From assembly GCA_946965045.2 (NCBI GenBank), contig OX337235.1:62001-126000 (forward strand): a stretch of 64,000 bases of DNA. Direction: 5' to 3'. This document shows positions 9,809 to 32,076 of this stretch, in pieces (within the stretch, counting starts at the first letter, position 1; every line of letters begins with the position of its first letter). Source of the DNA: Epithemia pelagica (lineage: Eukaryota; Protista; Bacillariophyta). Both the position numbers and the translations under genes were made by a program. The notes below the pieces were generated by a model, which was given only the letters and a program-made list of their open reading frames with translations, ran no database searches and was not told where the DNA came from.

Positions 9809-10227
9809 GGTCTTAACCGCGAAAGACTTACACAATTTAGGAAGAATCAATAAATTGTGGCAGAGGAGTCACCAGGACCGTTGTATGTGGGTGGTCGCAT
9901 GCCTTATAAACCTGTGGGACGTTATCACTTTGAAGGAAAGAAAACAAAGTCTTGGCTGAAGGTCCGCATCGGGTTCTTTTTGGGGTTCTTGTCACTCGCG
10001 AATGAACGCGACTGAGAGAAAAAATTTCAAAATCATAGATTGGGGACAGCGGCAGCTACGAGTAGACCAAGTACAATACAAACATTCCTCTTCCCGCGTT
10101 GATGCTTGTGGGCGATATTGGATAGAAGTAGAATTTTCCGCAACAAATCGCTCAGACCGACACCCGACGAGAGTGTGTTGACACAAATATGAAACCAATA
10201 TTACTCGATTGGTGGAAATTGGAAAGG

Positions 10228-10321: not shown

Positions 10322-11443
10322 GGAAGTGGTTTTTTTTTCAAGGTTGCTGGCTTTTGTGGACAAACGGGGAAACAATGAATGCAGGGACAACAACTAATAC
10401 CAAACTGTGGATCATCCATCGTGCAAGAAGAATAGAATCACCACGAGAAACGGAAGAGAGCCCACTCACAACAACCACCATGCCACATGCACAAAAAGTT
10501 GCGATTTGTTGCAAGTCGCCTTGAGATTTATCTCACTTGTCTCGCTTCCTTGACACGATCCATCCCCCATAGAGTGAGTTTCATGGGCAAGGGCACAAAA
10601 GGGCACTGGATATTGGTTGGATGCACTTCTTGAAGAAAGGGCTAATGTTTAACGGGGGGCAAGGCATTCATGCTCGTCTATTATTAGATATTTATTAACA
10701 ACGATCAACTACTGGTAGCTATTGTACAATATGTAGCTTAGGTACAGCCCTGAAGGATCAAGATCAAGCCGGCATCTCCGGACGCAGACCGATTGTTCTG
10801 TTGCCCCATTTTTACCGACCGCACACAATTATAGAAAATCAAGTGGCATCCGATTGTCGTCAACAAGTAGTGAGTATTAGAGACTAGAGATACTTCGATC
10901 TTGGACACCAACTTTGGTATCAACCTGATTTGCTGTGGTAACTAATGACCATCATACTGTGGCTCTGACAGGCATTCGAAGTCCTGGTCCAAAAGGACAA
11001 CTATTGTGCGTACACTAGAGACATAGTTGTGGGAGAAGGATGGTTCTTTTTTCTTTAAAGGATCGTTCAGCACAACTGTCAACTTAAGTTTTGCGGCCTT
11101 GTGCCGTGAATTTGCTTGAACCGTTTGACTTGTACAAAAACACAAAATGCTTGTGAAATCGAGTGGATGCGCCTTGTCTGTGTGTATCATGATTGTGCTT
11201 GTCAACACCAACACATACAAAGCAAATCCGAAGCACACAGATACGCCCGCTCCATGGCATTGGCTTCCAGCTTTCTCTATAAGTCGTGGCATAGTTGGAA
11301 GCATTCTTCTTTGTCGTTGTGGTGGTATAATTCTGATTGTTGCTGGTAGTAGTGGTCGAAGGGTTGGATGAATAGTTACTCCAGTGGTACTGGTTGTGCT
11401 TGCGTCACTGAGTACATTTCTGGTGGTTGTTGTGGCTGCATCA

Positions 11444-13159
11444 CTACACGACTTCGAAAATTCGAGTCTCCCCTCTTCGAAAAGTCTGCCCTCTACGTCG
11501 ATACTGAGGTGCGCCCACCACCACTGTCGAGCCATCTCTGGAAACATCCGTAGTCCAACTAAAGAACAAGAAAGGGCAAGGGAGCCAAGTTAGAACGCAA
11601 AGAAGGGAAAACCATGTACTCAAATAGCATGATCATAGGCACGTACCCAAGCCATTCTCCTTCCGAACTTCCAATGACATGTTCCACAACTTCCCATTGC
11701 AATGTCTTATCATTTTTCTTGTACACGGATGCTCGTCCGGCTTCTTTTTTGGTTTTGCTGGGGGAATAAAAGGGTGTCCCCACTACCAAAAGATTAGCAG
11801 CATTGGAGAGACTCACGGAATGTACCAATATCGGCGATCCAAAGGCATCGTCATCCGGCAAGTCAACAATGCTGGCTTGAGCACTGTTGTAACAAAATAT
11901 GTCCACCTTTTGTATCAGACCAACGACCCGACAATCACCATTCATGTTCAGAGCAGTGACACTCGGAATTGACCAGAATTGTGTCCATTCCTCGTTCTGA
12001 TCGTCATAAGAGACGAACCGAGCCCTTTGATCTGGTCCCACAAGGACCATCCGATCACGTGTATCCGATATCTCAACGGTCCTGTCGTACGACAGGCTAT
12101 TGCTGGAGCGTTCAACAGGCGGCAGGACGAAATCGCGAGCATCATTTTCCCACCTTTTCCAACGGTCGTCCCAATGATAGGTTTGAACAATACCTTCCCA
12201 AAAGTGGTCAAACACAAGGATGTTACCGTCACCCGAAATATCTAACGAGTCGACTTCATACTGCAGCATGTCCGAGTCGATCTGGTCTTGCACTTCAAAC
12301 TCCAATTCTTGATTTAGATTGGACAGATCCGACACAATGTCAAACACAAAGACTTCGGTGCGGCTGTTGACGGCCAGTCGTGTACCATCGCTCGTCATGG
12401 CAATATGATGTCCAAATCAATCTCTATCCAAAATCGTTATGGGTGGAAAGAGAACTTTTTCTTCTTGATACTGACCCGTGCTTGTACGACGAAAAAATTG
12501 GACCATCCTTCCTCGGGAGGCTACCACAATGAACCCATTGGCCGAGATGGCAACCTGGTGGTAGTATCCCATAGACTCATCCGTTGCACCCAAAAGTTCA
12601 AAATCTCCCACGGATTCCAAGGAATCCACCTCATTGGAAACGGTTGGTTGGGGATCGAAGCTTCCTCCCGGTGTGTTGTCATCCTTGTCGTCGCCGCCAC
12701 CATCATTACGCACTATGGCGAAAACCACGGCAATAATGACAGCAGGCACAATAAGCCCGAGAAAGTTTTTCAGATCAAACCTAATCTGTTTGCGATTGTT
12801 GTTGCTCGTGGTGTTGGTGGTGTTGGTGGTGTTGCTGGAGTTGTTGTCGTTGTTGCTGCTGCTGTGATTGTCGTTATGGACGTAAGCAGAAGGAGGAACG
12901 GGAGGAGGGAGATCTTGTCCATTCTGGTGACCTCCTGCGGGTGGCGACGATTCTTCCACGTTGCTGCTAGGAGCATCGTTGTTGTCATTGTTGTTCTATA
13001 CCGGTGCCATGTTCCCATCATCTTCGTCGCCACAGTCGCTTGGTTCGTAGGGCGCGGTGGGGTTCAGAACAATCTCTGGGTCCACTACAAGCTCGGCTGG
13101 TGCTACTTCCAGCTCTTCGTCGTTGTCGTTGGTGTTCATGACCGGAACGGCATGCACCA
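11444..13159 (-). pseudogene. Beta-propeller gene copy 2, main part; interrupted at about codon 15 by the 18.4-kb transposon
   Basis: Paralog of 8061-9804 with the same intron position and final exon (stop 11444-11446). In-frame stops TAG at 12996-12998 and TGA at 12417-12419 (DWFG becomes D*FG). Confidence 0.88.
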
Positions 13160-13174
13160 CATCTAAGGAAGGAA
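13160..13174 (+). repeat. Left terminal inverted repeat CATCTAAGGAAGGAA
   Basis: Read directly; pairs with 31588-31602. Confidence 0.92.
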
Positions 13175-13260
13175 CGGTACGCCAGTTTATGGCGGTTTAA
13201 TTATCGATAAGAAAGCACCCCTAAGCGCATCCTACTAGAATCATCCGCGCGCAGGACACG

Positions 13261-13487
13261 CGCACACCTACAAGAACATGCGCACACCTACAAGAACATG
13301 CGCACACCTACAAGAACATGCGCATGGCCCTTCCTCACGTTATTACTAAAAATGTGCTTTCCAGAACCAGCAAGCGCATGACCCACATTTCACCAACTTC
13401 AACACCATGCACAGTCAAGAACCAATAGTCATCACATCCCTCCACCTTCATGCACAGTCAAGAACCAACAGTCATCACATACCCTCC
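13261..13487. repeat. Left subterminal tandem repeats: 20-bp unit x3 (cgcacacctacaagaacatg, 13261-13324) and about 43-bp unit x2 (catgcacagtcaagaaccaa..., from 13406 and 13449)
   Basis: Read directly. Confidence 0.88.
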
Positions 13488-13687
13488 TATGTATGCACTC
13501 ATCCTTGATTGTGTCACATCACCATCATGCGCATTACTCCAGCATCAAGTGCAAGCAAGTTGAACACAGTGCATTTAACTAACACCATGCACACACTCCC
13601 ACTAACAACCAGCGAATGAATGGAACACAATACATGTAGCTATATAGGAGTAGTATATGAAATGAAACCAATTGTCACTCTGATCAA

Positions 13688-15680
13688 TCACTGCCACGAC
13701 CGTTTTCGTGGCCTTTTAGAAGGCCTTGTCACAGCATCATCATCTGCATACCCCATTCGAGAGCGATATTGCCCATTGAGAAACATCATGAACCAGATAC
13801 CGCGGTCGCCTGCTCTGTCTTCACGAGCGATTTTCTCTTCCATATCCTCAAAATAGTCCATACCATCCTCATTCATACATCGACTTGAGTTCCAACTGCC
13901 TGAATATTTGAAGCGAGGATACCTTGCTGAGGATGTATCAATCATTTGATCAACACCATTTTCATTGTACCACCTTGGATTTAATTCAAATAGTTTCGCC
14001 TTAAAAGTGGTCTTGCCCATGTGAGTCCACACATCCCAGCAATCCACAAGGATGGTCAATATGAATGCCTCGTCACTTGAAGTGAATAACTTCAAGGCCT
14101 TTTCGCAATGTTCCTTTCCCTGCTGCTCAGTGTGGTCACCAAAATTGAAATCAATCACGGTTTTATGCATATTCTCACCATAGACACATGGACCAAACAA
14201 TTGCAAGAGATATGAATAGGCATAGTTGTCACACTTCTCTCCTCTCAATAACAGAAATTCTTCCAGGGTAGGCATTGGCCCAAAGTCTTCACAGTCGTTC
14301 AAAAGGCATGGATACCTCCGCTGGAAATTACTGTCACGCCATAGATCAAGACCCACATGTTCTAGATTCAGCAACAAATTATCTCACATCTCTTTATGAG
14401 AAGACGACATGATGAACCAACACATTCACTCTTCGATTGACACTTACTTATAAATGCTTTTCGCATGGAAGCCAGAACATTTGATCGTTTGCTTCGGAAC
14501 TTGTCAAGCATATAAGGTGAATGTTCAATCCACCACTCCTCTTGTTGTTTTGCATCCGTAATGCCTTTGCCTTTGAAATAGTGCTCAGTAAAATATGTTT
14601 TGCCATACTTCCCCCAAAGACCATTCGGATCTGCCTTAGTATCTTCGGACATGGAGAAATACTTGACATAACGCCATGCCACCTTCCGAACAAATGTATC
14701 AAAGAACTTCTCCGATACCACCTCAGGCTTTTTCTTCGGCTTTTGCTTCTTATTCTTGTCCTTTTCGACAGAACCTTTGTGTGTAGTGGATGTTACAATC
14801 GTACTTGTCGGGCAAGATGATTGATTATGGTGTACTGTTGTTGTCTGTGTTTCCTGTGCCAACTGATTTTGAATATCGTCTTGTAGAAGAGTTTCCATCG
14901 CCTGATCAGGCCCTGTTGTTAGCAAAGTAGATGATGAAGATGACGACATATCCGAAAGGGAAGAAACGTCGTTAGCAAAGGTATCACCTGATGCATTCAA
15001 CCCACAAACACCCCCGTCATTAGAGCCGTCTCACCGACAAATTGTCCTCCTCTATTTTGTGCATCTAACAACTTACTGACAAGTCCTCCAGCAGGAAAAT
15101 GTCTCTCATTAGGATCAAAATCATCTCCATCATACTCACTGGGTCCATTGCTCATATTCTGCAATGCTCGTTGCATTTCAGGTCCAGTGAGAATATTTAC
15201 ACTGACGTCGTCCTCCTCCATGTTATTAACTGCCGTGTTTGTTGGTTGCGCAAAACCAGATGATGGTTGTGTTCTCAGCCCACCCTGTTCATTATTGCTA
15301 TCATCTGCTGAAGTCACATCGGCTCCATCTCTTTCTGAATTTGTTGCCTGCTCCAAAAGATTACCACTCCCTTCCACAGTTGTGCCTTCTTGTGCTTGTG
15401 CTTGATCGTTGTTCATCGAGATCTGTTCCTCTTCTTCCTCGTCATCAGAACTATCTTCTTGGAGTACTAAACCTCCATTGGCTGCTGCAATAAGAGCATC
15501 TTTGTTTGTAATTGTCCCGTCCTTGTTAGGAAGATTCTCTTTATTTCTTGTTGCCACTGCTGTCAAGATGCTTCTTCGTTGTCGTTCAACCTCTTTCTGA
15601 TTACTTCCATAGTTTGCATTTCGGACTGCTAAGGGTCGACGCCTCGTTGGAGCTGCATTTCTGGTGGTGACTCCTGCCAT
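13688..15680 (-). CDS. Transposon accessory protein ORF-A (605 aa, 3 exons), function unknown
   Basis: Three track ORFs join through phase-compatible GTAAGT...AG introns at 14988-15076 (89 nt) and 14362-14447 (86 nt); exon total 1818 nt. C-terminal motifs SSDEAFILTILVDCWDVW and KYSGSW...EDGMDYF; basic tail. Confidence 0.8.
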
Positions 15681-16244
15681 CGTTTATCTTGGATGCTCCG
15701 TCTGATTTATGACAAGGATGTGAACAAGAGCAGGGTGAAAACAAGACCTCTGATGGACAACCATTCAAATTCAAACGCTGGAATGCTCCATGTTTGAATC
15801 ATAAACTCCGTGTTTCAACGATGGTTCTTTAGAGAACGTATGAAGATGAGCATATGTGGTTTCAAGTACATCATACTTGTCAGATGGAACATTGGTGCAT
15901 GGGTTTGAATGATTGTCATTTCCTTTCTAATGTCGACAGTGTCGGTATCCTCGGCATTGACACAGTATTTGAATTCCAATCGCTGCTATCACCGTTGGTA
16001 TCTAACCCGGCAGGCTGGATTGGATTAAGTAAATACACACGACCGTTTGAAAATATTATGATCCGTTCATGTACATAAGCGATTTTCAGTCGCTTTTATG
16101 CACCAACGTCGGCCGATCCACCCAATGCGGAGAAATTCTGATATATGCCACAAGATTGACCACCGATGTCTCAATTTGCAGAAATCGATTATAGAGCATT
16201 TTTCATTACAAACCAAAATCTAAAACCACCAGCATCGTACCATC

Positions 16245-19200
16245 ATGGGCCAGCGTCGTAAAGTAAAAAAGAAGTCGCGAAAGAGATGCTCAAATACAAG
16301 CCAACAAGAGGAGTCCTTCATATCCTTTCAAGTGTGTCGTTTCTGTCAATCACGTTTCGATGCAAGAGGAATCAGCCGTCACGAAACAGTTTGTGAATTG
16401 AAAATGAACACCCAAAGGAAATGGCCAAATGTTGGCGATGACAACAATGATTGTGCCAGTAATATGAATGCTGATCCAATGAATATTGATATCATGGACG
16501 ATGAAACCACTATTCCGCATGCTGACCCACCAAAAGCATACTATGTACCTGGTGATACAGATAATATTATTCTGCGCAACAGCAAGGAGTGCCCGGTTGA
16601 TTTTCCTGCGTTCCTCGATAGAGATGGGAAGCAATTGAAACTTCATAAACACGATGCAGCCTTGGTCTCACTTATGATGTTACTTCGGAGAGCTGGTTGC
16701 CCCAAATATTTGTACAATTCGATCCTGGCATGGTCGAGTGACACATACTCAAGATGCGGTCCTGGGTTCTTCCTGGACAACCATTCAAAGAGGAAAACGT
16801 TTATCAAAAAGTTTTCTACCAAAGGTTTCAATTATCCCAAGGCCAAATTTTTCCCGGTACCAATGGAATTCACCCAAAAACAGGGTGTGGTTGTACCAGA
16901 GAGTGAGAAATCAATAACAACACCAGTATTTGATTTGATCAGTCAACTACAGCGTGTATTACAAGATCCCGATGCAACCAAGAAAGAAAATACGATCCTC
17001 GATGATGACGATCCGTATCGTCCATATGTTCCAAACAAGCACATCCAAAATATACAAGACGGAGAAGTATTTCAGAAAACAGTGGAAAAATATAGAGATG
17101 ATCCAGATGCCTTCGTGGTTGGTCTTGTCTGTTATATGGACAAAACACATGCAACAGGGGATGGAAGATATACATCGGAGCCTGTTGTAATGGTGCCATC
17201 TTTTCTAACGGAAACACAAATGTGGAAAGCAAGGCGACAGATCATCCTTGGGACTATTACAGACATGGAAATCATCAGCGGCAAAACATATCCTCGATAA
17301 AGGGACTCCTTGCCGAAATTATCATGCTCAATTGACTAAGATCCTCGAAGGTCTTGTCAGTATCCAAAAACAGGAAGGTTTATGGATGAAACTACGTCTT
17401 CATGGGATTATCAAAGTTGTCCGTTTGATATTGCCAATGATTGTTGTCAAAGGAGACGGGAAGTCTCAGGATAACCTTGCAGGTCGGTATGCCTCGCATC
17501 ATCCAAGTGTTGGAAGACTATCATGGTGTTGCAACATTAAACCAAGGGATAGCAGATACCCATGGCATGAATGTTCTTATATCAATGCTGCAAGTACATA
17601 CAAAATGTGCTTGAATGCATTGGGTCTTAATGAAAATCGAGAAAAATTGACTGAACAGGATGTTGATTACCAAGAGAGAGACAATGATACATTTTCGACT
17701 TTGACTGTTCCTACCTGTTTGAGCACATCGCAAGTAAGTCAAGAAAATAGCAGAGATGGAGGGGTCAATACCCTTGTGTCAGCTGCAAAAACCCAATTGC
17801 ATGACATGGGACAATATGCAGTCGATCTTTGTTTTTCCAAGGTTTACCTGGGTGAAGGAACCAATTCTGAACATGGGATTTTCTCGGCCAGTAGTTGTGA
17901 TGTTCTTCATACATTGAAATCTGGGATAATGAGATACATCATGATTGACTTTTTCACGTTGATGACAAAAACTGAACGGGCCATGTTTGATTATGTCTAC
18001 AATTCAATCTTTCGGGCAAGTAGACAGACTGTATTCTCGTATTCATCGAAACTTGGATATCCCGGAACATCATTCTCGACCGGGATCAGTAACCTGTCAA
18101 AAGTAACTGCCAATGAGTGGGTTGGGATCATGTTTGCTTCAGCAGCTCTATGTGCCACTGCCAGAGGTCGCCTTATATTCGCGAAGAATATGGCAAAGAA
18201 ATGGAACAAGGTGGTTGCGGAATGGAAAAAACGACAAGCAAAGCAAACATCCAAAACCACCAACAAGACATGTCAAGCGGACTTGGATCAAGTGCAAGAG
18301 ACAAGTGAACCTATTGCTGACAATGAGGATGATACTCCACCAGATGAAGAGTACGAACGTACACGTCTTGATGATGATGATAGTGTTGACATTGATATCA
18401 CAGCTGAAACTGTTTTTGATGATGACCCAGTTGCTTACAGGTCTATCTGGGATGTTGACGAGCGGGAACCATACATAGACTTCCTGCATCTATTCGAGAC
18501 TCTTTTGTGTTTCAACAGCTGGATTCGTATGGATACATTCTGGGAAACAGACCCAGACTCACAAGAAGGACAAACAACAGCATCCAAGTCTCTCGAATCA
18601 GTGCGGATTTTGATGGATGGCATCAGGAGATATGCACCCAGGCTCGATAAAAAAGGCAAATTGATGTCCAACGGGTGGATGATACCAAAATTCCACAATC
18701 TCATACATATTATACAATAGATTCAGAATTTTGGACCAGCACGACTGCTTGATGTGGAGTCAGAGGAAAGTAATCATAAGGAAATTGTGAAATTGAATGC
18801 AAAAACGGTACAGAAACGTGGAAAAGGAATTTTTGAGTCGCAACTTGCAGAAAATATCTGGTGGATGCAAAGCTTGGAAATGCTGCAGGAAGCAACAGGT
18901 CTTGAAGAAGATCATGTCACCTTTCTCCAGGAAGGGAAGTCGCCTTATGAAATAAGGAGAAAAAAGGGATCCCAAAACCAACTCCCTACCACATCAACCT
19001 CGAATAGCCGTGGAACGGTCATAGTAGTATCCATGACCAGAGAAAAATGTTTGATTCCAGTACCTCACACGAACGTACATACTTCTGGTGATAATCAAGA
19101 CCAGTCATCAGATGAAATAGACAAGGATCTTCCGTCTCCATTGGGTATGTCGATTCAAGTTCCAGGCACGACCAGAAAAGAACAAGACGGATCAAACCGA

Positions 19201-20097
19201 AACCAGACGAGTAGTGTACACAGGCGATTGACAGCAGCACCACACGAGGAGGATGTGGTATCAGTGAATATCGAATTCCATTCCAAAACAAATCATGACA
19301 TGACATTGCCACAGTTTTGTAATCACTTCTTTCGATTACATTACAAACGCTTTTTTCATCATATAGACGGGATGAGTGATGATCCAACAAATGAGACTTC
19401 AACCACACTGGAATTGTTCGGGAGCACAGAACTTAAGTTCGAAGACCCCAGGATAGGAAATATACGGGCTCATCCGAATTATCAAAGCGAGGGGCCATGG
19501 AGAGATTGGGTGATGGCTAAAGTTCCAAAGAAAAAAAGGAAACCTCTTGATGAGGTATACAACCAACCTCTCGGAGAATTTGATACCATCCTATGTCAAA
19601 CGATATGCTTCATTCAAATACCCATTACTCGAACAGACCACATACAAATGCAACCATCACCGGTATGTCAACCTTCAACTTCACCCGAGATGACCCATGT
19701 CCTTCTCCGAACAACATATGTACGGAGTACAGCTGATATCGAGAAATCATCCGTTCTCTTTCAAAAATGGCGTAAGCGTTTTGACCTACATCGAATAGCT
19801 GAAATTGTCATGGTTCCACTCCGGAATATTGTTGAGGTTGTTGGTGTAGTGGATGAGAACCCAGAAATGATTCAAGACCGTGATTCTATCCCAACATATT
19901 TCCATTCTTCACTTGAAAAAGATTTACTCCAAGAAGACAGTCGTAATTTGAGAAACTTTAGTGACAATGTCTGGGCCGTACGCAACATCAAAGAATGGGC
20001 TTCCGAATTCAATGAAAGTGGCCGTGACAATCTCGAGAAACGCTGTAATGAAATGAAAGAAAGATTGAAACAATCCGTTAGCAATTCGACGTCATGA
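16245..20097 (+). pseudogene. Plavaka/CACTA(CMC)-like DDE transposase (about 1280 codons), disrupted
   Basis: N-terminal CxxC...H...C finger; CYMDKTH...EPVVM; RNYHAQLTKILEGL; VKGDGK...AGRY; WCCN; CDVLHTLKSG; PKFHNLIH...NFG...DVESEESNHK; HPNYQSEGPWRDWVM. Frameshift near 17268 and in-frame TAG at 18718-18720. Confidence 0.82.
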
Positions 20098-20292
20098 TCA
20101 TAATTTGCCTCTATGGGGGGTTGTCACATACCAGCACTCCCCTCCTAATCTCCCCCCCAACCGTACGCGAGCCGACCAATTCAACTCAGAGTGTCACACA
20201 CAAATTGGATGAAATAGTAGATACTTTCCATCGTTTTCCAAAAGTCATCCTCGGTCTTCAGTCAGTAAGGCTATTCTACTCCTCTTCAAACA

Positions 20293-21420
20293 ATGATCAA
20301 CCCATACAAATCGAGGAAGAAAACAGTTCCACCCTTGGTGGTCAAACCAAACTTTCCAGTCACAAAGATACCTCCATCTAATGAAGAAATGATGATCCAA
20401 CCATACGAGCTAGAGGAAATAGAGACCCCCATGGTCAAAACGCACTCTCCAACCCCGAAAACTTGCAACGGTGAACATGACAAGAAGCCACCGCCTGCGT
20501 CCAAATCAATAATCAAATGTCATCCACTTCCGTCTTCTAAGCTTGATACCAAGGAAGAAGAGGAGAAGAAACTTCCACCAATCAAGCGCCCATCGTATCA
20601 GTTGATCCCAAACCCATATAAGAAGAAGCTCAAGGTTGCCGATCCATCTACTATTCCAATCTTGCTATTACATGACTCTCCTCCAATGTGTAAACCAAGA
20701 GCAAACCGAGATAAGCTGCATCTCGAAGTTATTCGGTTCACTGAGCTTGTCAATAAAATCTATGGATCCAATGATGTTCCCCCAGAGCCAGTCTGTCCTT
20801 GGTGTTTTGTAACCGACAACCTTTCAACAGATCGTAGACTTACAGGAAAATGTTGGCATCGCTTCGGTAAATCTCTCTCATGTGCCGATTGTTGTTATGG
20901 TTGTGGAGTGCCCATGAACGGATGTGATTCAGGTGGGAATGAACGTTGTTGCACCGAAGCCCTGTATATCCATGATTCGATGAATATCACACGCGAAGAA
21001 TCAGACATAAACAAGGTTCCATTGGTGTGTAAGTCTTGCTTAAGGCCATGTAATTCTTATTCAGAATGCGTCTTCTCGCATGGTTGTTGGAACTCTTGCA
21101 ACAAGTAGTTCGTCTGGCGATTCTGTCATATTGCTGGACGGGCGTTGGTGTACTCACAATTGAAGCCCAATTGCAAAGGACCAGGCACGATTCCCAAACA
21201 TGCACAGGATATTATCAAAAACGCAACAGAGTTGATGTACAACGAACTGCGAGATCCGATGGAGTCTTCTCAGTACACATCTCCATTTTGTCATGTTCTT
21301 GACCAAGACTCCTGGTCTAAATGGCTTGTCTCCATGTCTTTCGGTCGATACTACAATTACATGCCGTTCTTCCGTCATTGTTACACAGCCTTGATGTCTT
21401 CATCGAAACCATTGTATTAA
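20293..21420 (+). pseudogene. Cys-rich cargo gene 1 (about 375 codons, one in-frame TAG)
   Basis: Pro/Lys-rich N-terminus, then CPWC...CYGC...CKSC. The frame continues past TAG 21106-21108 (NK*FVWRFC) to WSKWLVSM...NYMPFFRHCY, matching the paralog at 21482-22549. Confidence 0.7.
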
Positions 21421-21481
21421 ACAAACTCTCGACTTCTTCGAAAGGCAAACTGGGAACAGATAACAAGATTTATAATATATG

Positions 21482-22549
21482 TCAATGATCATTACCATCC
21501 ATATTTTCACGTTCCAACTCCGCCGTCTCAGCCATTCTTTCGAGACAATTACGGAAGCACCTGACAAAGAGTGGCATGTAGTTGCGAAAACCAGCTGTAG
21601 AATGAGGCAACGAAAGCAACCATACTGCCCATGTTTTATCAGATGCTCGGGCATAATCGTATGGGGCACAATCGTTATCATCAAAATAGAAACGGGATCG
21701 CAATTCCTCAAGCCAAACGCTGCGGACAATAGTAAACATTGGCCAGGTGATTTGACGGGGAAAGTTCACACCATCGTAAAATGATGTTATTTGAAAAGTA
21801 CGCGCCACAATATGGCGTATGAGCATACAGAACTGCCACACGAAGTGCTTGTTCTCAGATTCCACACAGACACTGCATGAATCCAAATCTGGTTGTGGAA
21901 TCCCAAAAGGTATTGAGCGTTCGGGAATTCGGAAACATTCCCTACACACCTGACAATGAAATGTTGGATGCCTGTGGCGGTGACATAAGTTACAACGCAT
22001 CAAAAAATTCTGCTGCCAGATAACTGAATAATCGAGATATGCCGCACGTGTTACCACTGTAGTATTTCCATGATTGCACTGGTGATGTGGTGTGGGACGA
22101 CCAAGGATAACACAGTATGGACAGAGTTTCTCACCTCTAAGCATTTCGTCCACCAACCGTTTGAATTCAGTCTGGATTTCATGACCGACACGCATCTCTT
22201 CTCTGAGTTGTTCTATGACTTGTGGTACATCTTCTTCTTCATTATCGTAATCAAAAAAGATCCTCCCAGCGTCCCTGAAACAAGGCCGATCATTCACTTC
22301 CAAGTTCCTGTCGTTGATCGCCCGCATTTCTCGTCGTCGTCTACGTTCCCGAACATAAAAATCTTCTTCCTCCGATTCTTCTTCCTCCGATTCATCTCCC
22401 GATTCATCCTCCGGTTGGTCCTCTGGATTGTCAGCCATTCTGTTTGCAGTCTCCTTCTCTTCGTTTTGCTGTGAATGCAAATACCTGTACTTGTTGCTTC
22501 TTCTTTGGATTTTTATGAAACCTCTGCTGTCATATGAACGAGAGTTCAA
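21482..22549 (-). CDS. Cys-rich cargo gene 2 (355 aa), paralog of 20293-21420
   Basis: Acidic N-terminus, CPYC...CNLC...CQVC...CSVC, then NKHFVWQFC and WAVWLLSL...NYMPLFVRCF. Confidence 0.75.
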   Translation of the reverse strand: MNSRSYDSRGFIKIQRRSNKYRYLHSQQNEEKETANRMADNPEDQPEDESGDESEEEESEEEDFYVRERRRRREMRAINDRNLEVNDRPCFRDAGRIFFDYDNEEEDVPQVIEQLREEMRVGHEIQTEFKRLVDEMLRGEKLCPYCVILGRPTPHHQCNHGNTTVVTRAAYLDYSVIWQQNFLMRCNLCHRHRHPTFHCQVCRECFRIPERSIPFGIPQPDLDSCSVCVESENKHFVWQFCMLIRHIVARTFQITSFYDGVNFPRQITWPMFTIVRSVWLEELRSRFYFDDNDCAPYDYARASDKTWAVWLLSLPHSTAGFRNYMPLFVRCFRNCLERMAETAELERENMDGNDH

Positions 22550-22689
22550 CTGGAAATAGATCCACGGATAACCGATCGGTCGCGTTTGTGTACAGAAATC
22601 GTCACACTATACTATTCACTGTGAGTATTACCACATACTGTGAGGATAAGTGTAATCATTCCCAACATGGTCGCGTTTCACTCGCTGGG

Positions 22690-22975
22690 CTGACCTATCG
22701 GTGTGGCTTTGCAAAATTCCATGGACATGGAACAATGACATGCTTCTAGAACTCGAATGGCTCCAAATTTTCGTATAGACCATTTGGGTATCATTTGCAT
22801 GGACGGTAAAGGCTCTGAATTTGTCTATCATCAACCAAAAGACTTGCAATAGACCCTACCGGTGTGGTGTTGCCGTCGTCCCAAAATTCTATGGACATGG
22901 AGCAAAGACATTCTTCTAGAAATCGAATGGCTCCAAATTTTCTAGAGACCCTTGGGGTATCATAGGCATTGATTG
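22690..22975. repeat. Degenerate tandem duplication (about 165-bp period) inside the transposon
   Basis: cctatcggtgtgg...atggacatggaacaatgacatgcttctagaactcgaatggctccaaatttt recurs as cctaccggtgtgg...atggacatggagcaaagacattcttctagaaatcgaatggctccaaatttt. Confidence 0.8.
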
Positions 22976-23030
22976 ATGGTAGGTAGTGGTTTTGCTGATA
23001 GGTGGGCATGGTCTTGTATATTAGAAATCT

Positions 23031-26000
23031 CTATTCGTCACTAGATTTCTGGCCCGACGCCAAGCCTCCAATTTCATGAGAATTGTCATCATCGTTTTGT
23101 GTTACGGTAGCACTCAAAGATCTTGCATTTGTGCTAAAAAACCAACCAATCGTATGATTTCCCACATTCTTGTCTTTCGGTGGTATGGAGTGTGTATGGA
23201 CAGATGTTCCATGTCTGATGATTCTCCCGTCCCATGCGATCGCAATGCCATGGAATAACCGGATACAAAGCCCATGATAAGTCTTGTCCTTATGCTTTAT
23301 AAGGACATTGGGAAGGACGAAATACCAATTGTTGGTGCTGCCCGGGTTGGTTTCTGTCCAGATTGTAAAGGACACTGATGCATCATGAATATCATAGTGG
23401 CTTGCATTCATCAAATCGCAACTCAAAATGATGGATGATGACACACCCCTTTCGTTTCCTCCCAATTCGTTTGGGACATCCAAACCGAAGTTTGTTTCCA
23501 GGTGTCTGAAAGCCGATAACACACCAGGGAATTTCCTCTCACAGAATCGCCGAACACCTCCACAGATTTTTGGCAATATATTCATCATGTTTGGAGATAT
23601 TTTGAAAAGTTTGTCAGAAAAGAATGTACTTCTGCCACCCGTTTTTGTGCACACACCAACAGATGTCATGGTCCCCATATCACCATGGTTACACCTTGCA
23701 TTGGCTGATCTCTCTAGTGTACCGCTCTGCGCGAAGTGACATGACCTCTTGTGTAACAATGAAAGTAGGTTTTTGTCATTTTGCTGAAGTGTTGTCACTT
23801 TGACATGGCTGATGGTTTCGTTTTTACCCGCGTACCCACGTGTCCGAACAATGAATGTTGTATCTTCTCCGGTATCCCTTACATCAAACAGGAGCGGACG
23901 GACCGAAGTATCAGGCGGAGGGGACAGGTTTCTATACAATGCTCCATGGACGTACTTTCGGCATCCAGTCTTGTTAGCACTGGCTTTATTCAGCAGTGTT
24001 TCACGATACCACACTCTAAGAGAATGTTGGTCATTTGGTGTCATTTTTGGTCTGGACTTTTCACTTGTGTAATGATCAGGGGCCCAAAGTGGAGAACCAC
24101 TTTCAACATCAGACGCTTGGTAGCATTCATGGACAACTCTCTTTGCACTTTGTGTCCAATCAATACACCAACACTTGACAACCTTTTTGAGGAATGCCCC
24201 ACCACTTGGTTGGCCGTCGGAATGTCGTAAGCGCAGCCAGGATATAGGTAGTGCTACCAAAGATGAAGTGCATTCCGATGTTGCATACCCAGTATTCATT
24301 ATCATTGCCGAAGTATAAAAAATACCGGCCAAAGGGATGATAACGATCACGTCATGGAAAATATGGTCCATACAATCATCACAGTTTTTCTTGGATGTGC
24401 GACAATGGAAGATTGTATCGTCAAACGCAGACCACACGGTTTTGGGGTATTTCCGATGTCCCTTATGTCGTTGACAGCGATTCAGTACACATTCTACCAA
24501 GAAGGCACATGGAGACCGGGTTGTTAAGAACTTCGGGTCACATTCTGTCACATGAAGCTTGTTGTCTTCGAAACAACAATGGCTTGCTGGATCTTCCGTC
24601 ACCTCACCAACCATGTCTTTCATTTGTTCGTATATGTTAGGTAATTTTCCCATGATTGTCTGGAGGTCTGTTGGTGTGATGTCGTAGTCTTTCAGAACCT
24701 TTGTATAGCAGATGCCGAACATTCTCCGATCATCATTGCTACTGAGACAGAGTGATAGTAAGTCGCGTAGTCTTTTTGCTACCTTGTCCATGTCAGGAAT
24801 TCCAAAAAAACACATTTCTGTATGATCGGATTCATTTGGTTTGGAGAATTTTGTCGTCAAATGGCTAGGTTTCTCAGCCTGTCGTCTCTTATACTTCTTC
24901 ATCGTTTCATGTGTTAGTGTCAACTTCGATAGGCCCTCTTGTCGTCGTTGCTTGTTCGTGGGTAGTCCCCTGGATGAACCAATGGTCTTACATTCTTTCC
25001 TTTTCCTTTCCGGTGAAGTATTCTGTTCGTCAGTATCGTCATGATTACCGTGTATTGGAGACTTGTGAATCTCCTTCGTACCTCGTTCGTCTTGTATGCG
25101 CTGATCCGTTTGTGTTGTCGTGTTGATGCTACTTCCCTTGTTATGGTCGTTTTTTGTCATTTGGTCATCGTTGTTCTTGTTGCTACCTTTTTGTTTGTCT
25201 GTACTATCCTTTCCTTCTTTGGTTTGTGTCGCATCATCTTGGTTGACACTGTCATTGTGACAGCTAGACGGATTATCACTGTCAGGTGTGTTGTTGGCAT
25301 TCTTAGACCCGTTCTCTCCAGAATTTCCGTGTTGTTCGTAAGCAACAATCTCTTGCTTGCCACATTCCTTGCCCTTTTGTTTGTCTGTAGAACCGTTGCC
25401 ATCTCTGCTTTGTATCTCTTCTCCTTGTCCACATTCATCTTGGTGACTGGAGGTTGCTTTCTGACCGCTCTGTCTGTTCCGATCATCCCTCTCCTGATTG
25501 TCCTTGGAATTCCAACCAAGTTTGGATAGGCCATCCTGCCCTCCACGACTCGCTGTAGTGTGATGAATGTCCTTTTCTCTCTCTCTACGAGGTGATTGAT
25601 TTAGTTGACTATTACCTCTATCAGTTGAGGGACGGTTAGGCTCTCTCTGACGGGTACGCCTAGAATGATCGTTGTGTCCAGGATGACTGTCTCTAAGTGA
25701 CAAATGGTGCCTGGAATGTTCGTTGTATCCAGGGAATCTCTCCCAATCCATCGGATCCATCGGATGTCGATTAGACCATTGATTGTGGCTATCTCTATAT
25801 ACCGAATGGTGCCTTGTATGTTCTCTCGAATGTTCGTTGTATCCAGAGAATCTCCTCCAATCCATCGAATGTCGATTAGACAATTGATTTTGATTATCAT
25901 GTCTTCTTTTTCTATCCCAGTAAGTGTTTTCCATGATTTGATCTCTTCTCCCTCTAGACTCGTCTTGGTGGTTATCATGGTATCCATGTTGGTCTTGTCG

Positions 26001-28309
26001 TTCAATGACTCCTCTTCTAGTTTGTTGGTTATCTTGATCGAAATGTGAATGACGAGACCCATGATAATCCGATGTATTAGATCCTCTCGATCCTGGATGA
26101 TCATCATTGAATCGATTCTGTCCATGCTTACAATACACTGGCCTGTCATGTTCAGGTAGCGAACCCCACTCATTTGTTCTGGGGCTTCGAGTTGTCGACA
26201 GGACGTTGTTCTGATTCCGTCCTCCCCACAGCCCATGTGGATTCTCTCTCTTGTCCTTGGTTCTTTCGTTATCATGTTGGGTTTGCTCTGTTCTATGTCT
26301 TTCTTCAGGCAGCTCACTCCGGTTACCCCAATTCGCAGGCATTGCAACGGAACGTGATGAGTTATTTCCTCCCCATTGCTGGTATTTAGGCTTCTCACCC
26401 TCTGGTGACTGATAGATTGCTTTGTGTTCAGAAGGATGAGTATATGTTCTTTGAACAGAACGTGTCATAGGACAGAAGTACAATAGACTTTGAATATCCT
26501 GGCTGCACACCATACATGTGTTGTGGCCCCGCTGCATCCAATCTCCAACACATTCCCGACAAAATGTATGTCTACAAAGAAACAGTTCGCAATCCACTTT
26601 TCTGGTCATACAAATCGAACAAACCTCGGGCTTGTATTTTGTCTCAACTCCTCTTTGTTCTAGTGTTGATGGCTTGTTACTCACGGGTGATTTTTTTGAT
26701 GATTCTTCAGGGTGTCCCTCAATCGTAGTTGTAGTGTCTTTGATTGTTTTCCTATGTCCCTCTTCAGGGAATCCCTCGCTCATAGTTGTAGTGTCTTCCG
26801 CTGTTTTCTTGTGTCCCTCTATCTTCTCCGCACCAAACATGTGGATGTTACTCTTGATCTTTTGTCCACACTGGGGACACCATACATTATGATACTTGAA
26901 CCGTATTCGTAAGCAATTTCCGTGAACCAGATGTCCACATGGGATGAGGGTACAGACTTCGCTGTCTGTATCTGTTTTCAATGCCCTGTTACAGCATACA
27001 CAAGAATCTGGACAATATACAACGGTCGGTAGCAATCGATTTATATCTCTCTTGGAAAGTTTGGAGTCAAGTAACACCTCCTTGGGTTCTAATCCCACCC
27101 TCGGGCACGGTATGAACAATATGTCACCATCCGTAGTCCACGTCTCTGAACACCCACCATCAGATAGATCGACGTTCTCCTGGTATTCGTATTTATCGGT
27201 ACCACGTGAAAACCCCACTTCAACAGGATCGTCGTCGCTGTTGCCATTGAAATTGTCAGGTCCCAACACCAAAGGAGAAATCGAATTGCCTTCAACAGCA
27301 TGCTCTAGTCCTCTCGAAAATTCATTATTGTACCGTATTTGATTACTCGAAAAACAATTGGATATCGTCATACTCTTGTCTATCTGACCTTCTTTCCGAC
27401 CCGGGTTTGGTCGACTACTCATTATGTTTCCAAGCATTCTGATCACAATAGCTTGTGGCATTGGCTTTGGAGTATCCTTCTTAGGTTCTGGCATTTTCAC
27501 AATGCGATATCGCCACTTGTTACATTCCTTGTTTGTATCATCTTCTTCCACTAATGATGGGTCATAACATAGACTGACAGGCAGGGCACCTTTTGACGTA
27601 TTGACCAGGTCCCATTTCCGTAGTACATGACGCGTCGTTCCTTCCCAGTATTGGTCTGATCGATTATGTATTGGTTCGTAGATATGAAGTATCTTTTTGT
27701 CGATTTCGAAAGCCAATAAAGCTGGGTCGCTGACATCAGTTGCTGTTGTCAAGGCAATGATCGCCAATATCAGTGTGTTCGGATCCTGTTGTCTCCATGA
27801 TGACATAGGAATTTTCTTAGGAAATGGGTTCCTGTTTGCTTCATCAAATGTTACTTTGTCAACATATACTAGGTTCTGATGGTTGTGATGGACCATCAAT
27901 TTCAAACAAGTATAGAAAGACTCAATCGGCATGCCCGTCCTTGAAGTGTTGTAGCAAAGATCTCTCCGACGATGTCTATGTGGGATATGCAAAACACGCG
28001 TTGTAGGGTCCTGGTCATTCATCAACCCACTGTAAGACATGCATAGTGTGCACCTAAATAATGTCTTGATTTCGACATGCGTGTTGTCCTTCCCCATACT
28101 CTTAGCATACTGGGTTGCTAGCTTCATGGCCGACTTGATGTTCTCGTTGTTTCTGTTAGTTTGTTTTTCCGCGAACTTGTCCAAGTAACCGTCACCAATG
28201 TTGTCGATTGATTCATTCGAGTCCCATGAGTCTTTTCTTCTCTTCTGGTTTACTATAGGATCAAGAACGTGTGGAATTTCAATGAAAGGCTGTGGTACCA
28301 CACCATCAC
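23031..28309 (-). CDS. Large cargo protein: RING-H2 + RING-HC + low-complexity linker + C-terminal TET/JBP-like 2OG-Fe(II) dioxygenase domain
   Basis: Uninterrupted 1756-codon ORF. RING motifs CVCC...CGHLVHGNC...CPQC and CSIC...CRHTFCREC...CMVC. C-terminus GDMGTMTSVG, NASHYDIHD (HxD; His codon 23397-23399), YFVLPN, AWDGRIIRHGTS (distal His 23211-23213). Confidence 0.8.
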
Positions 28310-28330
28310 CTGTCTCCTCAATTCCCTTGT

Positions 28331-29548
28331 TTATGGAAGCACAACGTCTCTAAGACAAAGAGACCAATCATTTTTGAGATTGTCTAATCCTTCTCGATTC
28401 TTGGCAAGTCGCTCGAACATCTTACCTCGTTGTCTGCGGTTTTTATTGTCGTCGCTTATAATCTTCCTGACCTCTTCCACACGGTCTGATTTGAGGGCAA
28501 CTTGGTTCGACGTTGTAATGGAAGTTGGTAGTACTTGATCCTTTTTCTCGTCAGTAGGATCATTACCAGCGACGACCTTCTGTCTCTTTTTTGCCGGCGA
28601 GTCTATACTCCGACGTTGCACGGCAATTTCTTTCGATTTCCTGGCAGACAGTACCTCTTGTTTTTCTATATAATGCAGTAGATCGTAGAACATACCGCCA
28701 TCGTCTCCGTTTCTTCCATATTGTACCAAAGAATCTCTTTCTTCAAGGTACATCTTGAACCATGTGTCAGGCATCGTATACAACAGTGCTTTCTCCATTT
28801 GGATATTGGAAATCACGTCCATGTTCTCGTCCGATGTCGATTCTGAGATGAAACGGTGTATGGCCACCATATGTTCGATAACCCATGCGATTTTACCAAC
28901 AGGTACGAGACGCGGTTTCCTGTAAAGGGAGGAATCATCTAGAAGGTATCGTTTCAATGCTTCTCCAATCCCACCGATCCCCTTGCGTGTCTTCTTAGAG
29001 ACTAAGCCATGAGAGGAAAGAAATCTGATAATGGTTTGTCTCAGATTCTCAGCACCGTCTATCACTGTTGTCCCAAATGCCTGATTCCAAATATTGGAAA
29101 CAGGACTGTAGAGAGTCTTTTTGAACAACAGTCGAGCAACCATTGGAGTCAACTTGTCATCATCATCCATCTCGTTCTTAATTCTTGTGAAACAGAAAAC
29201 GGAGTGACAGATGATATCTTGGAATGCAGGCGAATAACAGATTGGTAGGAATATCTTCACATAATGGCCGTCATGTGGTACCTCCACTGTTGTCCATTTT
29301 CCTGATTTGTCTTGGAAAACACTTTCATACCAATTGAGGACACTTTCGTATGTAATGGGCATAATACCGGTGTAGTGAGATTCCTCGCTTGTGTGTGTTC
29401 GAAGTGTATGATTGGTACCAGAAACAGTCATAGTCGACACGTCCTTTCTTTTGTTTCGCACTTCATCATTCATTGAAGAAGGGTCACCAGGATTCTTGGC
29501 GGTCGGTGGTTTTTTGTAGCGAGGGCCCTTGATGCGGTTGCCCGCCAT
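28331..29548 (-). CDS. 405-aa cargo ORF, possibly exon 1 of the RING-TET gene
   Basis: Co-oriented and about 30 bp upstream of an ORF whose track start is GTG, not ATG. A donor G|GTAAGA at 28425 and acceptor AG at 28310-28311 would join in frame (2133 aa), but that acceptor is purine-rich and weak. Confidence 0.6.
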   Translation of the reverse strand: MAGNRIKGPRYKKPPTAKNPGDPSSMNDEVRNKRKDVSTMTVSGTNHTLRTHTSEESHYTGIMPITYESVLNWYESVFQDKSGKWTTVEVPHDGHYVKIFLPICYSPAFQDIICHSVFCFTRIKNEMDDDDKLTPMVARLLFKKTLYSPVSNIWNQAFGTTVIDGAENLRQTIIRFLSSHGLVSKKTRKGIGGIGEALKRYLLDDSSLYRKPRLVPVGKIAWVIEHMVAIHRFISESTSDENMDVISNIQMEKALLYTMPDTWFKMYLEERDSLVQYGRNGDDGGMFYDLLHYIEKQEVLSARKSKEIAVQRRSIDSPAKKRQKVVAGNDPTDEKKDQVLPTSITTSNQVALKSDRVEEVRKIISDDNKNRRQRGKMFERLAKNREGLDNLKNDWSLCLRDVVLP

Positions 29549-29569
29549 TTTGTACTTGTCGCGATGCGC

Positions 29570-30905
29570 TTTTTGTGTAGCGTCTTTGTTTCAACAACAA
29601 CAACAACAAGGGTAGTCGAGGAAGCGCTTTAATTGTAGCGTCTTTGAGACAACCTTGTGTACTTGTCTAAACAGTAAAAAGTGTGCGCTGAATTGTGTAG
29701 CGTCTTTGGTTTGGTCCTGAACTCTGGTGGTAACAAAACAACAACCAAATCGAAGGAATACACTACGACGCGCTTTATGTGTAGCGTCTTGTTCGTTGTG
29801 ATCCAACAATCGGTGCCAGAATTTGCTACTCCAAAACCAGGGGTTGGTTGGTTGTCCAAGCAATCTCGCGACAAGAATAGAACAGAAGCAACTGGCTACC
29901 ACCGTGTCACACTGCTTGCTTTGGGTCTGTTCTATTCAAGTCCGAGTATCACGAGGACAGGAGGGTTCTTGATAAACAATCTAACAGATAGCCCGAAACC
30001 GCTTCAATTGTAATAGCGTGATTGGAGTGAAGGACAGAGCTGGGTGAAACAAGCAACAATCAGACAGATGCCCCAAGCCGCTTTAATTGTAGCGTGGTGA
30101 TTGGAATGGCAGAGCTGCAAGATAGTGCAAGTTTCAAAGATAGGACAAATGTCGACAATATTTCGAATGCTCTGGTGGTCGTTCTTCTTCTTGGGTTCCT
30201 CTTCTTCTTGTTTTCCTGTTGTAGCGGTTTTGGAGTGAAGGTCGTGGTTGAAAGGAAGCAAGCAACAATCAGACAGATGCCCCAAGCCGCTTTAGTTGTA
30301 GCGTGATTGGAATGGCAGAGCTGCAAGATAGTGCAAGTGTCAATGTCTCGAATGCTCTGGCCGTGCTTGAGTTCCTCTTCCTCTTCTTCTGGTGCAGCGG
30401 TTTTGGAGTGAAGTGTTGTAGCGGTTTTGGAGTGAAGGTCGTGGTTGAAAGGAAGCAAGCAACAATCAGACAGATGCCCCAAGCCGCTTTAATTGTAGCG
30501 TGATTGGAATGGCAGAGCTGCAAGATAGTGCAAGTGTCAATGTCTCGAATGCTCTGGCCGTGCTTGAGTTCCTCTTCCTCTTCTTCTGGTGCAGCGGTTT
30601 TGGAGTGAAGGTGGCTGAAGAGGAAGCAAGCAACAAAAAGGTGGCTGAAAAGGAACCAAGCAACAATCAGACAGATGCCCCAAGCCGCTTTAATTGTAGC
30701 GTGATTGGAATGGCAGAGCTGTTAGGTTGATGAAAGAAGTTGGATAGGTGAAAGGATTGAAAAGGGAATCTCGGCAGAGAGAAAGCAAGCAACAAAAAGG
30801 TGGCTGAAAAGGAACCAAGAAACAATCAGACAGATGCCCCAAGCCGCTTTAATTGTAGCGTGATTGGAATGGCAGAGCTGTTAGGTTGATGAAAGAAGCT
30901 GGATA
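29570..30905. repeat. Right subterminal repeat arrays: gtagcgtctt x4 (29570-29790) and five copies of a core aatcagacagatgccccaagccgcttta.ttgtagcgtgattggaatggcagagctg with variable linkers (about 30055-30890)
   Basis: Core copies begin near 30058, 30268, 30464, 30665 and 30823; read directly. Confidence 0.9.
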
Positions 30906-31587
30906 GATAATGGGATTGAACAGGGGAATCTCGATAGCGTTGGGTGATCGATTGTTGTTGTTGCTGCTGCTGTTGTTGTTGTTTGTTGTGGTGTGTTGGG
31001 TGGAGGTGGAGGGAGATGAATGAGCATCGATTCTGGTGGTCGTTGATTGTTGAATGACTAGTATGCTAAGTTGTTCGGTTTTGTTCGATGGATCAGAGTG
31101 TCGAGTTGGTAATCCCCGCGGTTTGGGTGATTGGGAAGGAGGATCCATCTGAGACATTCTTTGGGACATCCATGTGCGTCAGTCTTTCTGGCAGCTGCTG
31201 TGTGATGTGGTGGGAGTGGAAATTCGTGATTCAAAGGTGAGGGGACAGACGCTTGCGCATGAGGGTTGCGTCATGCGCGTCTCGGGGGGGTCGAGCGCGC
31301 CAGATAGTTGTAGTGCGCATTATCGGAGTGTGGCGCGCGTTATTCGTGGTTTGATCGCGGGCTTGTGCGCATTAAAATTGTGGCATGCGCGTGATAGTCA
31401 GCTCGATCTCTAGAACTAGCTAGAGAAATGTGCATTGTTAGACCTAGATTTGCAGATTTAGTTGGGAAAGCAGGATTATAGTTAAAAACTGCGCATATAA
31501 AAATAAACTGCGCATAAAAAATTTTAATTTGGCGAATTTTTTCTAGAAATTCGCTTTTGGGGGTGGAAATCAAGCGCCGGGGCCCAT

Positions 31588-31602
31588 TTCCCTCCTTAGA
31601 TG
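31588..31602 (-). repeat. Right terminal inverted repeat (reverse complement CATCTAAGGAGGGAA)
   Basis: ttccctccttagatg read directly. Confidence 0.92.
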
Positions 31603-31644
31603 CACCTCATCGTTGCTGGTGTTGGTGTTGTTCGTGAGCAACAT
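31603..31644 (-). pseudogene. Detached 5' end of beta-propeller gene copy 2 (MLLTNNTNTSNDEV)
   Basis: Matches copy 1 MTMLLTNNNNNSNDEVVHAV; continues in frame at 13159 once the element and one CA are removed. Confidence 0.9.
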
Positions 31645-32076
31645 GGTCGTTCGAGTCGATCACAAAAGATGCGCAATGGTGTCTGTGGACTTGCACAGAT
31701 TATGTGCTCTCCGTTTCTCGACAAAGAAAAAAACTCAATAACCTGCTCCACGTCTGATTCGTCCACTGCCCAATCGTGTACTGTCTGTACCAGATCGCAA
31801 TCCGCAACCTCCGGTTTGCGCGAGTTGCGGGTCGTCGCATGCCTTGACTTGTATAGTAGGAGATTGCAAAGATTTGGTTGCAGTTTGTAGTTCTGCGCAT
31901 CTGGAACACCACCGATATTTGTATCTTAGGAACAAAAATCGTCTGTGGGCTAGGTGCTAGGTGACGAAAGAACTGGTCGCGCGCCAGCAGTCCGTTAGAG
32001 AACATGACCGCGACCTGCAAGACTAAATAGAAATCGCATTTAATACATGACGGCTAAGTAATCAACAAGGACATGT

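Follow-up and report, generated by a model that had tools for sequence, protein, structure and literature searches.

Plavaka is a lineage of DNA transposons whose name was reportedly first given by Iyer et al. in 2014. Giant members of this lineage that carry cargo genes are already known from fungi (PMC12730594) and from red algae (bioRxiv 10.1101/2025.02.11.637652). Kojima 2025 (PMC12730594) places Plavaka together with EnSpm, Mirage, Chapaev and Transib/RAG1 in the 'CMCT' clade, whose members have 5'-CA..TG-3' ends and 2-5 bp target site duplications (TSDs). Within Plavaka, the fungal PlavakaB group is described with the termini 5'-CATCA..TGATG-3' and a TSD of 2 or 3 bp, and the Plavaka families that carry a TET enzyme all belong to PlavakaB (PMC12730594). 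Here, we describe an element of 18,443 bp at positions 13160-31602 of a stretch of 64,000 nucleotides from the diatom Epithemia pelagica (contig C8, 62001-126000; referred to as the window), which was analyzed together with the genome of 60.5 Mb in 23 contigs. The insertion is real, its ends are exact, and it is a further member of the known Plavaka group and no new kind of element. Very probably, it is a young, giant (~18.4 kb) cut-and-paste copy of the Plavaka lineage with PlavakaB-type ends, belonging to the clade of CACTA, Mirage, Chapaev and Transib/RAG1. A literature search on Plavaka or JBP in combination with diatoms found no description of Plavaka elements from diatoms.

Insertion site and empty-site comparison

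At the left junction, the flank ...gcatgcacca is directly followed by CATCTAAGGAAGGAA, the first base of the element being 13160. At the right junction, TTCCCTCCTTAGATG ends at the last element base, 31602, and is followed by cacctcatc. The element has CATC at its 5' end and GATG at its 3' end, and a CA stands on either side of it (13158-13159 and 31603-31604). It lies within one of two tandem paralogs. Paralog A (8155-9804, minus strand) is intact; the protein encoded by its open frame of 549 aa begins with an acidic N-terminus of low complexity, includes one hydrophobic segment and matched no Pfam family. Paralog B is interrupted. According to tblastn, its body lies downstream of the insertion (11562-13159, minus strand), and the part upstream of the insertion (31605-31647, minus strand) consists of the first 13 codons with a putative ATG at 31642-31644 and a preceding threonine codon at 31645-31647. 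The insertion point lies 40 nt past the start codon of paralog B. As only one of these old tandem paralogs was hit by the element, the other one can serve as a proxy for the empty site, which reads catgcaccacctcatc (9750-9765) with a single CA at 9757-9758.

For comparison, a rejoined sequence was made with a local script by taking out the element and one CA; this is the sole sequence that was joined in the analysis, the searches with the transposase having been run with pieces of it and with an intact copy that has no introns. In a three-way MAFFT alignment, the part of the paralog covered by the left flank ends with ...CACCA, the part covered by the right flank starts with CACCTC..., and the two overlap by exactly CA. 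By blastn, the rejoined flanks (11397..31655) and the paralog (8014-9809) aligned as one segment of 1892 columns with 78.7% identity, which crosses the junction unbroken. Using the 549-aa paralog protein, tblastn against the rejoined flanks likewise yielded one frame covering residues 2-549 with 66% identity. At the junction the rejoined reading is TMLLTNNTNTSNDEVVHAV, i.e. ...TNTSNDEVVHAV... (tblastn; ...SNDEVVHAV...). When the rejoined site was searched genome-wide, the tandem paralog was the sole match. Rejoined paralog B is still dead, because it contains two more in-frame stops besides the insertion, at 12996-12998 and 12417-12419 (minus strand; tblastn). By its sequence, paralog B is a pseudogene irrespective of the insertion.

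The locus had been singled out in a prediction made from the DNA letters alone, according to which the flanks rejoin, minus one CA, to the string found in the paralog and thereby restore the reading frame ...NDEVVHAV.... Both statements are exact, as seen from the junction strings, the MAFFT alignment, the single blastn segment and the one tblastn frame; the alignment of 9700-9810 to the joined flanks, which had been proposed as a check, was run, and MAFFT and blastn agree. All coordinates, strings and the length of 18,443 bp given there correspond to the junctions as read directly. The prediction had also regarded the paralog as a built-in empty-site control. This is sound, belongs to the routine evidence used in curating transposons, and fixes the position of the insertion; the control is, however, a paralog diverged by 21% and not the allelic site.

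Termini, target site duplications and other copies

Taken alone, the window is ambiguous with respect to the length of the TSD. The left flank matches 11 and the right flank 9 of the 17 empty-site bases, which permits either a CA TSD with the ends CATC..GATG or a CAC TSD with the ends ATCT..GATG. A genome search with the first 401 bp of the element gave 30 matches, and 27 matches were obtained with the last 400 bp. The close matches all share the terminal 15-mer as well as the base on which they begin or end, and the family amounts to ~25-30 copies with identical termini. Left and right ends were paired on one contig in 21 cases, 3.6-20.3 kb apart. Eight of these pairs span 18.0-18.5 kb, among them one on contig C2 of exactly 18,443 bp, and the seven copies of this size besides the window copy have unrelated flanks and their own 2-bp duplication each. 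Altogether, matching 2-bp flanks were present in 20 of the 21 pairs (binomial P ~1.6e-23 at 1/16 per pair), the sequences being GA (five pairs), TA (four), TG (three), CA, AG and AT (two each), TT and CT (one each). No strong target motif is apparent among these TSDs; the second base is A in 11 of the 20 pairs. Since nearly all paired copies share 2-bp flanks of varied sequence, the TSD is 2 bp long, and the CA dinucleotides next to the window copy represent its left and right copies.

The same data bear on the alternative that the element is a canonical EnSpm/CACTA transposon with a 3-bp TSD (CAC) and ends, ATCT...GATG, that are one base off. In the window, a 3-bp overlap of CAC is formally possible, as the flanks share 11 + 9 of 17 bases. 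Across the family, however, the 3-bp reading (xxC) fits 5 of the 21 pairs only, which is the chance rate of ~1 in 4, whereas the 2-bp reading fits 20. Moreover, the 3-bp reading leads to asymmetric termini, and the relatives of the transposase described below match Pfam Plavaka only, none of them Transposase_21. Canonical EnSpm/CACTA elements have CACTA/CAC..GTG termini and a 3-bp TSD, in contrast to the CATC..GATG termini and 2 bp found here. A canonical 3-bp-TSD CACTA element is refuted by the 2-bp flanks in the paired copies, and we consider it hardly conceivable that this alternative is correct.

With a 2-bp TSD, the ends of the PlavakaB-like element are formed by terminal inverted repeats (TIRs) of 15 nt. 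The left TIR (13160-13174, plus strand) is the sequence CATCTAAGGAAGGAA given above for the junction, and the right TIR (31588-31602, minus strand), read inward, is CATCTAAGGAGGGAA. The two agree in 14 of 15 bases, with one mismatch within the shared pattern CATCTAAGGA.GGAA. Among the 25 left ends with 78% identity or more to the query, 23 have an unaltered left TIR and two differ by one base each, and the right TIR is unaltered in all 25 complete right ends. CATC/GATG ends and a TSD of 2 bp (published as 2 or 3) are features in common with PlavakaB of fungi (Agaricomycetes; PMC12730594). In full, the termini are CATCT..AGATG, of which four of the five terminal bases per side equal the PlavakaB consensus.

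The original prediction had stated that the insertion was fixed to the base and that the whole 18,443 bp moved as one unit. The boundaries are right, but the window alone cannot distinguish between CA and CAC and the other copies were needed for this purpose. Movement as a single unit is borne out by the same termini at other loci, each with its own 2-bp TSD, and a genome-wide check for copies with different ends or TSD length returned the same termini throughout the pairs and the same TSD length in all but one of them. The ends had been described as CATC...GATG rather than CACTA/G; this is exact as far as the bases are concerned, but they are not a deviant form of CACTA ends, being the hallmark of PlavakaB with its TSD of 2-3 bp (PMC12730594).

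Over 5 kb (15660-20660), the window copy is 98.6-99.4% identical to seven other copies and has 19 private substitutions. Ten of these 19 are C>T or G>A, two of them at CpG, and several other copies are similarly enriched.

The transposase and its affiliation to Plavaka

The transposase gene (16245-20097, plus strand) is broken in the window copy. Three plus-strand open frames (16245-17300, 17248-18720 and 18754-20097) are pieces of one gene, and relatives from public assemblies continue through both breaks. A word-based protein search with a piece of the transposase yielded five close relatives, which are unannotated. In the copies on contigs C17, C2 and C16, the gene is an unbroken frame of 1292 codons encoding a protein of 1285 aa, and at least seven copies genome-wide have a full, stop-free transposase frame. 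Compared with the C17 copy over 5 kb, the window copy lacks 5 nt after 17268, resulting in a frameshift between the first and the second catalytic Asp, and has a C-to-T exchange at 18718, by which CAA became TAA and a stop arose between H-x3-H and the catalytic Glu; 31 further substitutions were counted. Both lesions are private to the window copy and absent from all seven other aligned copies. Therefore, the window copy was probably intact when it inserted, and it is non-autonomous now. Further Plavaka-like transposase families with ~62% protein identity are present in the genome, among them three tandem matches on C3 (C3:487822-494415) that are reported to lie in an open frame of 2730 codons.

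In an alignment of 28 sequences, the residues D99, D206, D211, C231, C245, H357, W613, K617, H619 and E643 of the transposase core are invariant and H623 is nearly so (full-length numbering is obtained by adding 200). The protein has a DDE triad with H-x3-H directly before the Glu, and the D, D and E residues and the H(3)H motif published for Plavaka, which are also those of fungal PlavakaB, are present. A DDE transposase with H(3-4)H before the catalytic E, 5'-CA..TG-3' ends and short TSDs are likewise shared with EnSpm/CACTA, Mirage and Transib/RAG1. An AlphaFold model of the core was obtained with a predicted local distance difference test (pLDDT) score of 69.7 and a predicted template modelling (pTM) score of 0.72. 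In a Foldseek comparison of this model with the PDB, the top 44 matches were RAG1 or amphioxus RAG-like (BbRAGL) chains (best E 3.7e-7), and HzTransib came next (E 0.035). The predicted fold of the catalytic core is closest to RAG1 and then to Transib. The elements differ in that Transib/RAG1 make 5-bp TSDs.

When a profile of the transposase core was compared with 1.84 billion representative sequences, 1496 of them were retrieved as relatives (E<=0.001). Three of those with full length, P0019 (E 4.7e-56), P0049 (E 2.6e-44) and P0151 (E 8e-29), each score above the gathering score of the Plavaka family PF18759. This family was matched by 12 of the 28 aligned full-length relatives and no other family by any of them, including Transposase_21. 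In this respect the sequence relatives side with Plavaka and not with EnSpm/CACTA, and, as in fungal PlavakaB, the transposase family reaches PF18759. In addition, the nearest neighbours of the transposase in the ESM Atlas are Plavaka clusters. Judged by transitive homology, the transposase belongs to Plavaka.

Several observations weigh against a young Plavaka insertion. Some concern the insertion itself. A search of the assembly revealed no empty site that is allelic or orthologous, the tandem paralog being the only match in the genome, and a scan of metagenome contigs for the uninterrupted site of paralog B itself yielded 0 matches. The empty-site control is a paralog with 21% DNA divergence and not an allele; it places the insertion and is no proof of recent polymorphism. 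Furthermore, the flanks of one paired copy (C16:3130006-3144168), whose ends are normal, repeat 4 bp (ACTC) rather than 2 bp. With the empty state represented by the paralog only, one could suppose that the 18.4-kb block predates the tandem duplication and was precisely lost from paralog A, or that unrelated DNA was joined by an assembly artefact. Yet the paralogs are 21% diverged at the DNA level as opposed to about 1% (~0.6-1.5%) for the element copies, and therefore the duplication is far older than the insertion. A loss would also demand exact restoration of the target, which is rare in cut-and-paste excision, and an assembly artefact cannot account for the same two termini recurring, with a separate TSD each time, at over 20 unrelated loci. 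We see next to no likelihood of either a loss or an artefact.

Other observations concern the assignment of this insertion to Plavaka. Pfam Plavaka gave no direct match to the transposase, even at E<=10, and the intact full-length protein matched no Pfam family; membership, as far as it can be derived from sequence, rests on intermediates and terminal features. A counterpart of the published C(2)C motif could not be made out, the invariant C231 and C245 lying in that interval 13 residues apart. The fifth terminal base is T and not A as in the published PlavakaB consensus (CATCT vs CATCA), and the template modelling scores from Foldseek are modest (0.25-0.46), for the transposase model and for the model of the TET-like cargo domain described below alike. 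The element could thus be a member of Mirage or of an unnamed sister lineage rather than Plavaka proper, with CATC ends that are convergent. The lack of a direct Pfam match and of an evident C(2)C motif would suit this alternative, and so would the 2-bp TSD, as Mirage is the other lineage of the clade known for 2-bp duplications. However, the profile matches, with E values of 1e-56 to 1e-29, are individually above the Plavaka gathering score, the relatives that match a family match Plavaka and nothing else, the Atlas neighbours are Plavaka clusters, and the CATC..GATG termini are held in common with PlavakaB. An origin in Mirage or a sister lineage is consequently regarded as unlikely, with a small chance of being right. 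As a PlavakaB-like element, the diatom copy differs from the fungal ones by its host, by the fifth terminal base, by its very large size of 18.4 kb, by the missing direct Pfam match and by a C(2)C motif that was not found.

Cargo genes, subterminal repeats and implications

When all large open frames of the element were compared with Pfam, RING fingers were the only result. They are located in the largest cargo frame (23031-28301, minus strand), which comprises 1756 codons, at residues 559-605 and in a second, weaker RING-type stretch. The last 427 residues of the same frame (23034-24314, minus strand) constitute a TET/JBP-like dioxygenase domain, recognised by its predicted fold. Its AlphaFold model has a pLDDT of 74, and Foldseek retrieved human TET2 (1e-9), Chlamydomonas CMD1 (3e-7), Coprinopsis CcTet (2e-6) and Naegleria NgTET1 (2.5e-6), all of them above AlkB and FTO. 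The model suggests a double-stranded beta-helix fold closest to TET-family enzymes. Among 20 diverse homologs, H306, D308 and H368 are invariant and H355, R364 and R367 nearly invariant; the HxD...H iron ligands and the conserved Arg are present. R364 and R367, which stand beside the invariant H368 in the motif ...WDGRIIRHGTS..., are candidates for the 2-oxoglutarate-binding Arg. At the sequence level, the domain gave no match to Pfam Tet_JBP (PF12851), a feature in which it differs from fungal PlavakaB, and its profile found no matches among PDB sequences; one homolog matches the Tet-like family PF20515 (E 0.0014).

A TET/JBP-like dioxygenase as cargo is a further feature in common with fungal PlavakaB, resembling the published TET-carrying Plavaka families. 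In contrast to these, the diatom protein combines the TET-like domain and two RING fingers in one frame of more than 1750 aa, an arrangement unmentioned in PMC12730594. The giant Plavaka elements of the red alga Bostrychia moritziana (17.4-19.1 kb; bioRxiv 10.1101/2025.02.11.637652) are similar in lineage, size class and non-fungal host. They also have accessory genes, one with a 2-oxoglutarate-dependent oxygenase domain, and tandem repeat arrays beside the cargo. Their cargo consists of three genes, one unknown, one with an N6-adenine methylase and a SET domain and one with a ParB and a 2-oxoglutarate oxygenase domain, whereas the diatom element, compared by description, has the RING and TET-like protein and Cys-rich frames.

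Several smaller frames accompany the RING/TET frame. An open frame of 405 aa (28331-29548, minus strand) stops 30 nt upstream of it in a different reading frame, and may belong to the RING/TET gene as its N-terminal part, with a frameshift or a short intron between the two. Two Cys-rich open frames, which converge (20293-21108, plus strand; 21482-22549, minus strand), match no Pfam family. They were considered as paralogs, but BLASTP between them was not significant (E 0.82). In the left arm (13688-15680, minus strand), three successive open frames of 229, 210 and 227 aa, for which no Pfam family was found, may represent a single accessory gene broken in the window copy.

Repeats are located close to both ends of the element. 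The left subterminal region (13256-13593, plus strand) contains a 20-bp unit repeated 3.5 times (13256-13324), a 43-bp unit repeated 2.2 times (13406-13498) and seven plus-strand copies of the motif ATGCRCA (13278-13593). In the right subterminal region (31254-31522, minus strand), six minus-strand copies of ATGCRCA (31254-31515) and a 19-bp unit present twice (31486-31522) were observed. Read inward, the motif has one orientation at both ends, and 13 such oriented copies lie within ~450 nt of the ends, whereas the rest of the window (63 kb) contains ~21, counting both strands. Subterminal repeat arrays are also known from CACTA elements. By this analogy, the ATGCRCA arrays may be bound by the transposase or by an accessory protein. 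Near the right end (30217-30933), the element also contains an internal array of tandem repeats, the units of which measure 197 and 159 bp.

Elsewhere in the window, a Copia-type retrotransposon open frame (58835-61297, minus strand; Pfam RVT_2, E 5.9e-39), a subtilase gene (55622-57028) and a gene with an adenylate/guanylate cyclase domain (44523-45995) were noted.

From the known mechanism of RAG1/Transib, a course of transposition can be proposed. The transposase would recognise the 15-nt TIRs (CATCTAAGGA.GGAA), with the oriented subterminal ATGCRCA motifs possibly acting as binding sites, and would nick and excise at the CA...TG ends. The flanking DNA would then form hairpins and the element would be freed. 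By strand transfer, it would be joined to a target whose two strands are cut 2 bases apart, and repair would give rise to the 2-bp TSD. The window copy, whose own transposase was lost through the 5-nt deletion and the stop, would now be mobile only by means of the transposase of intact copies elsewhere. As for the cargo, the RING/TET-like protein probably counteracts silencing based on 5-methylcytosine, by analogy with the role proposed for fungal TET-carrying transposons (PMC12730594).

With exact ends, the TSD length and a list of intact and broken copies at hand, a family of ~25-30 copies can be correctly masked and classed as Plavaka, which would otherwise be annotated as 'unknown' or 'atypical CACTA'. 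The element also takes the PlavakaB signature (CATC..GATG, 2 bp), and the association of Plavaka with a TET-like cargo, beyond fungi. Going further, it might tentatively be suggested, though we consider the stronger claim rather doubtful as a whole, that TET-carrying PlavakaB is no fungal speciality and is represented in this diatom by a currently active family with CATC..GATG ends, a 2-bp TSD and a TET-like enzyme joined to two RING fingers in one frame. If true, this would imply either that Plavaka transposase and DNA-base oxidase formed an ancient partnership, repeatedly retained across supergroups of eukaryotes, or that there was horizontal transfer of such elements between fungi and stramenopiles, and the cargo would seem to act against silencing by linking ubiquitin ligation with DNA demethylation. 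As a young family with intact transposase genes, it offers a system for tests of transposition and of the anti-silencing role proposed for the cargo.

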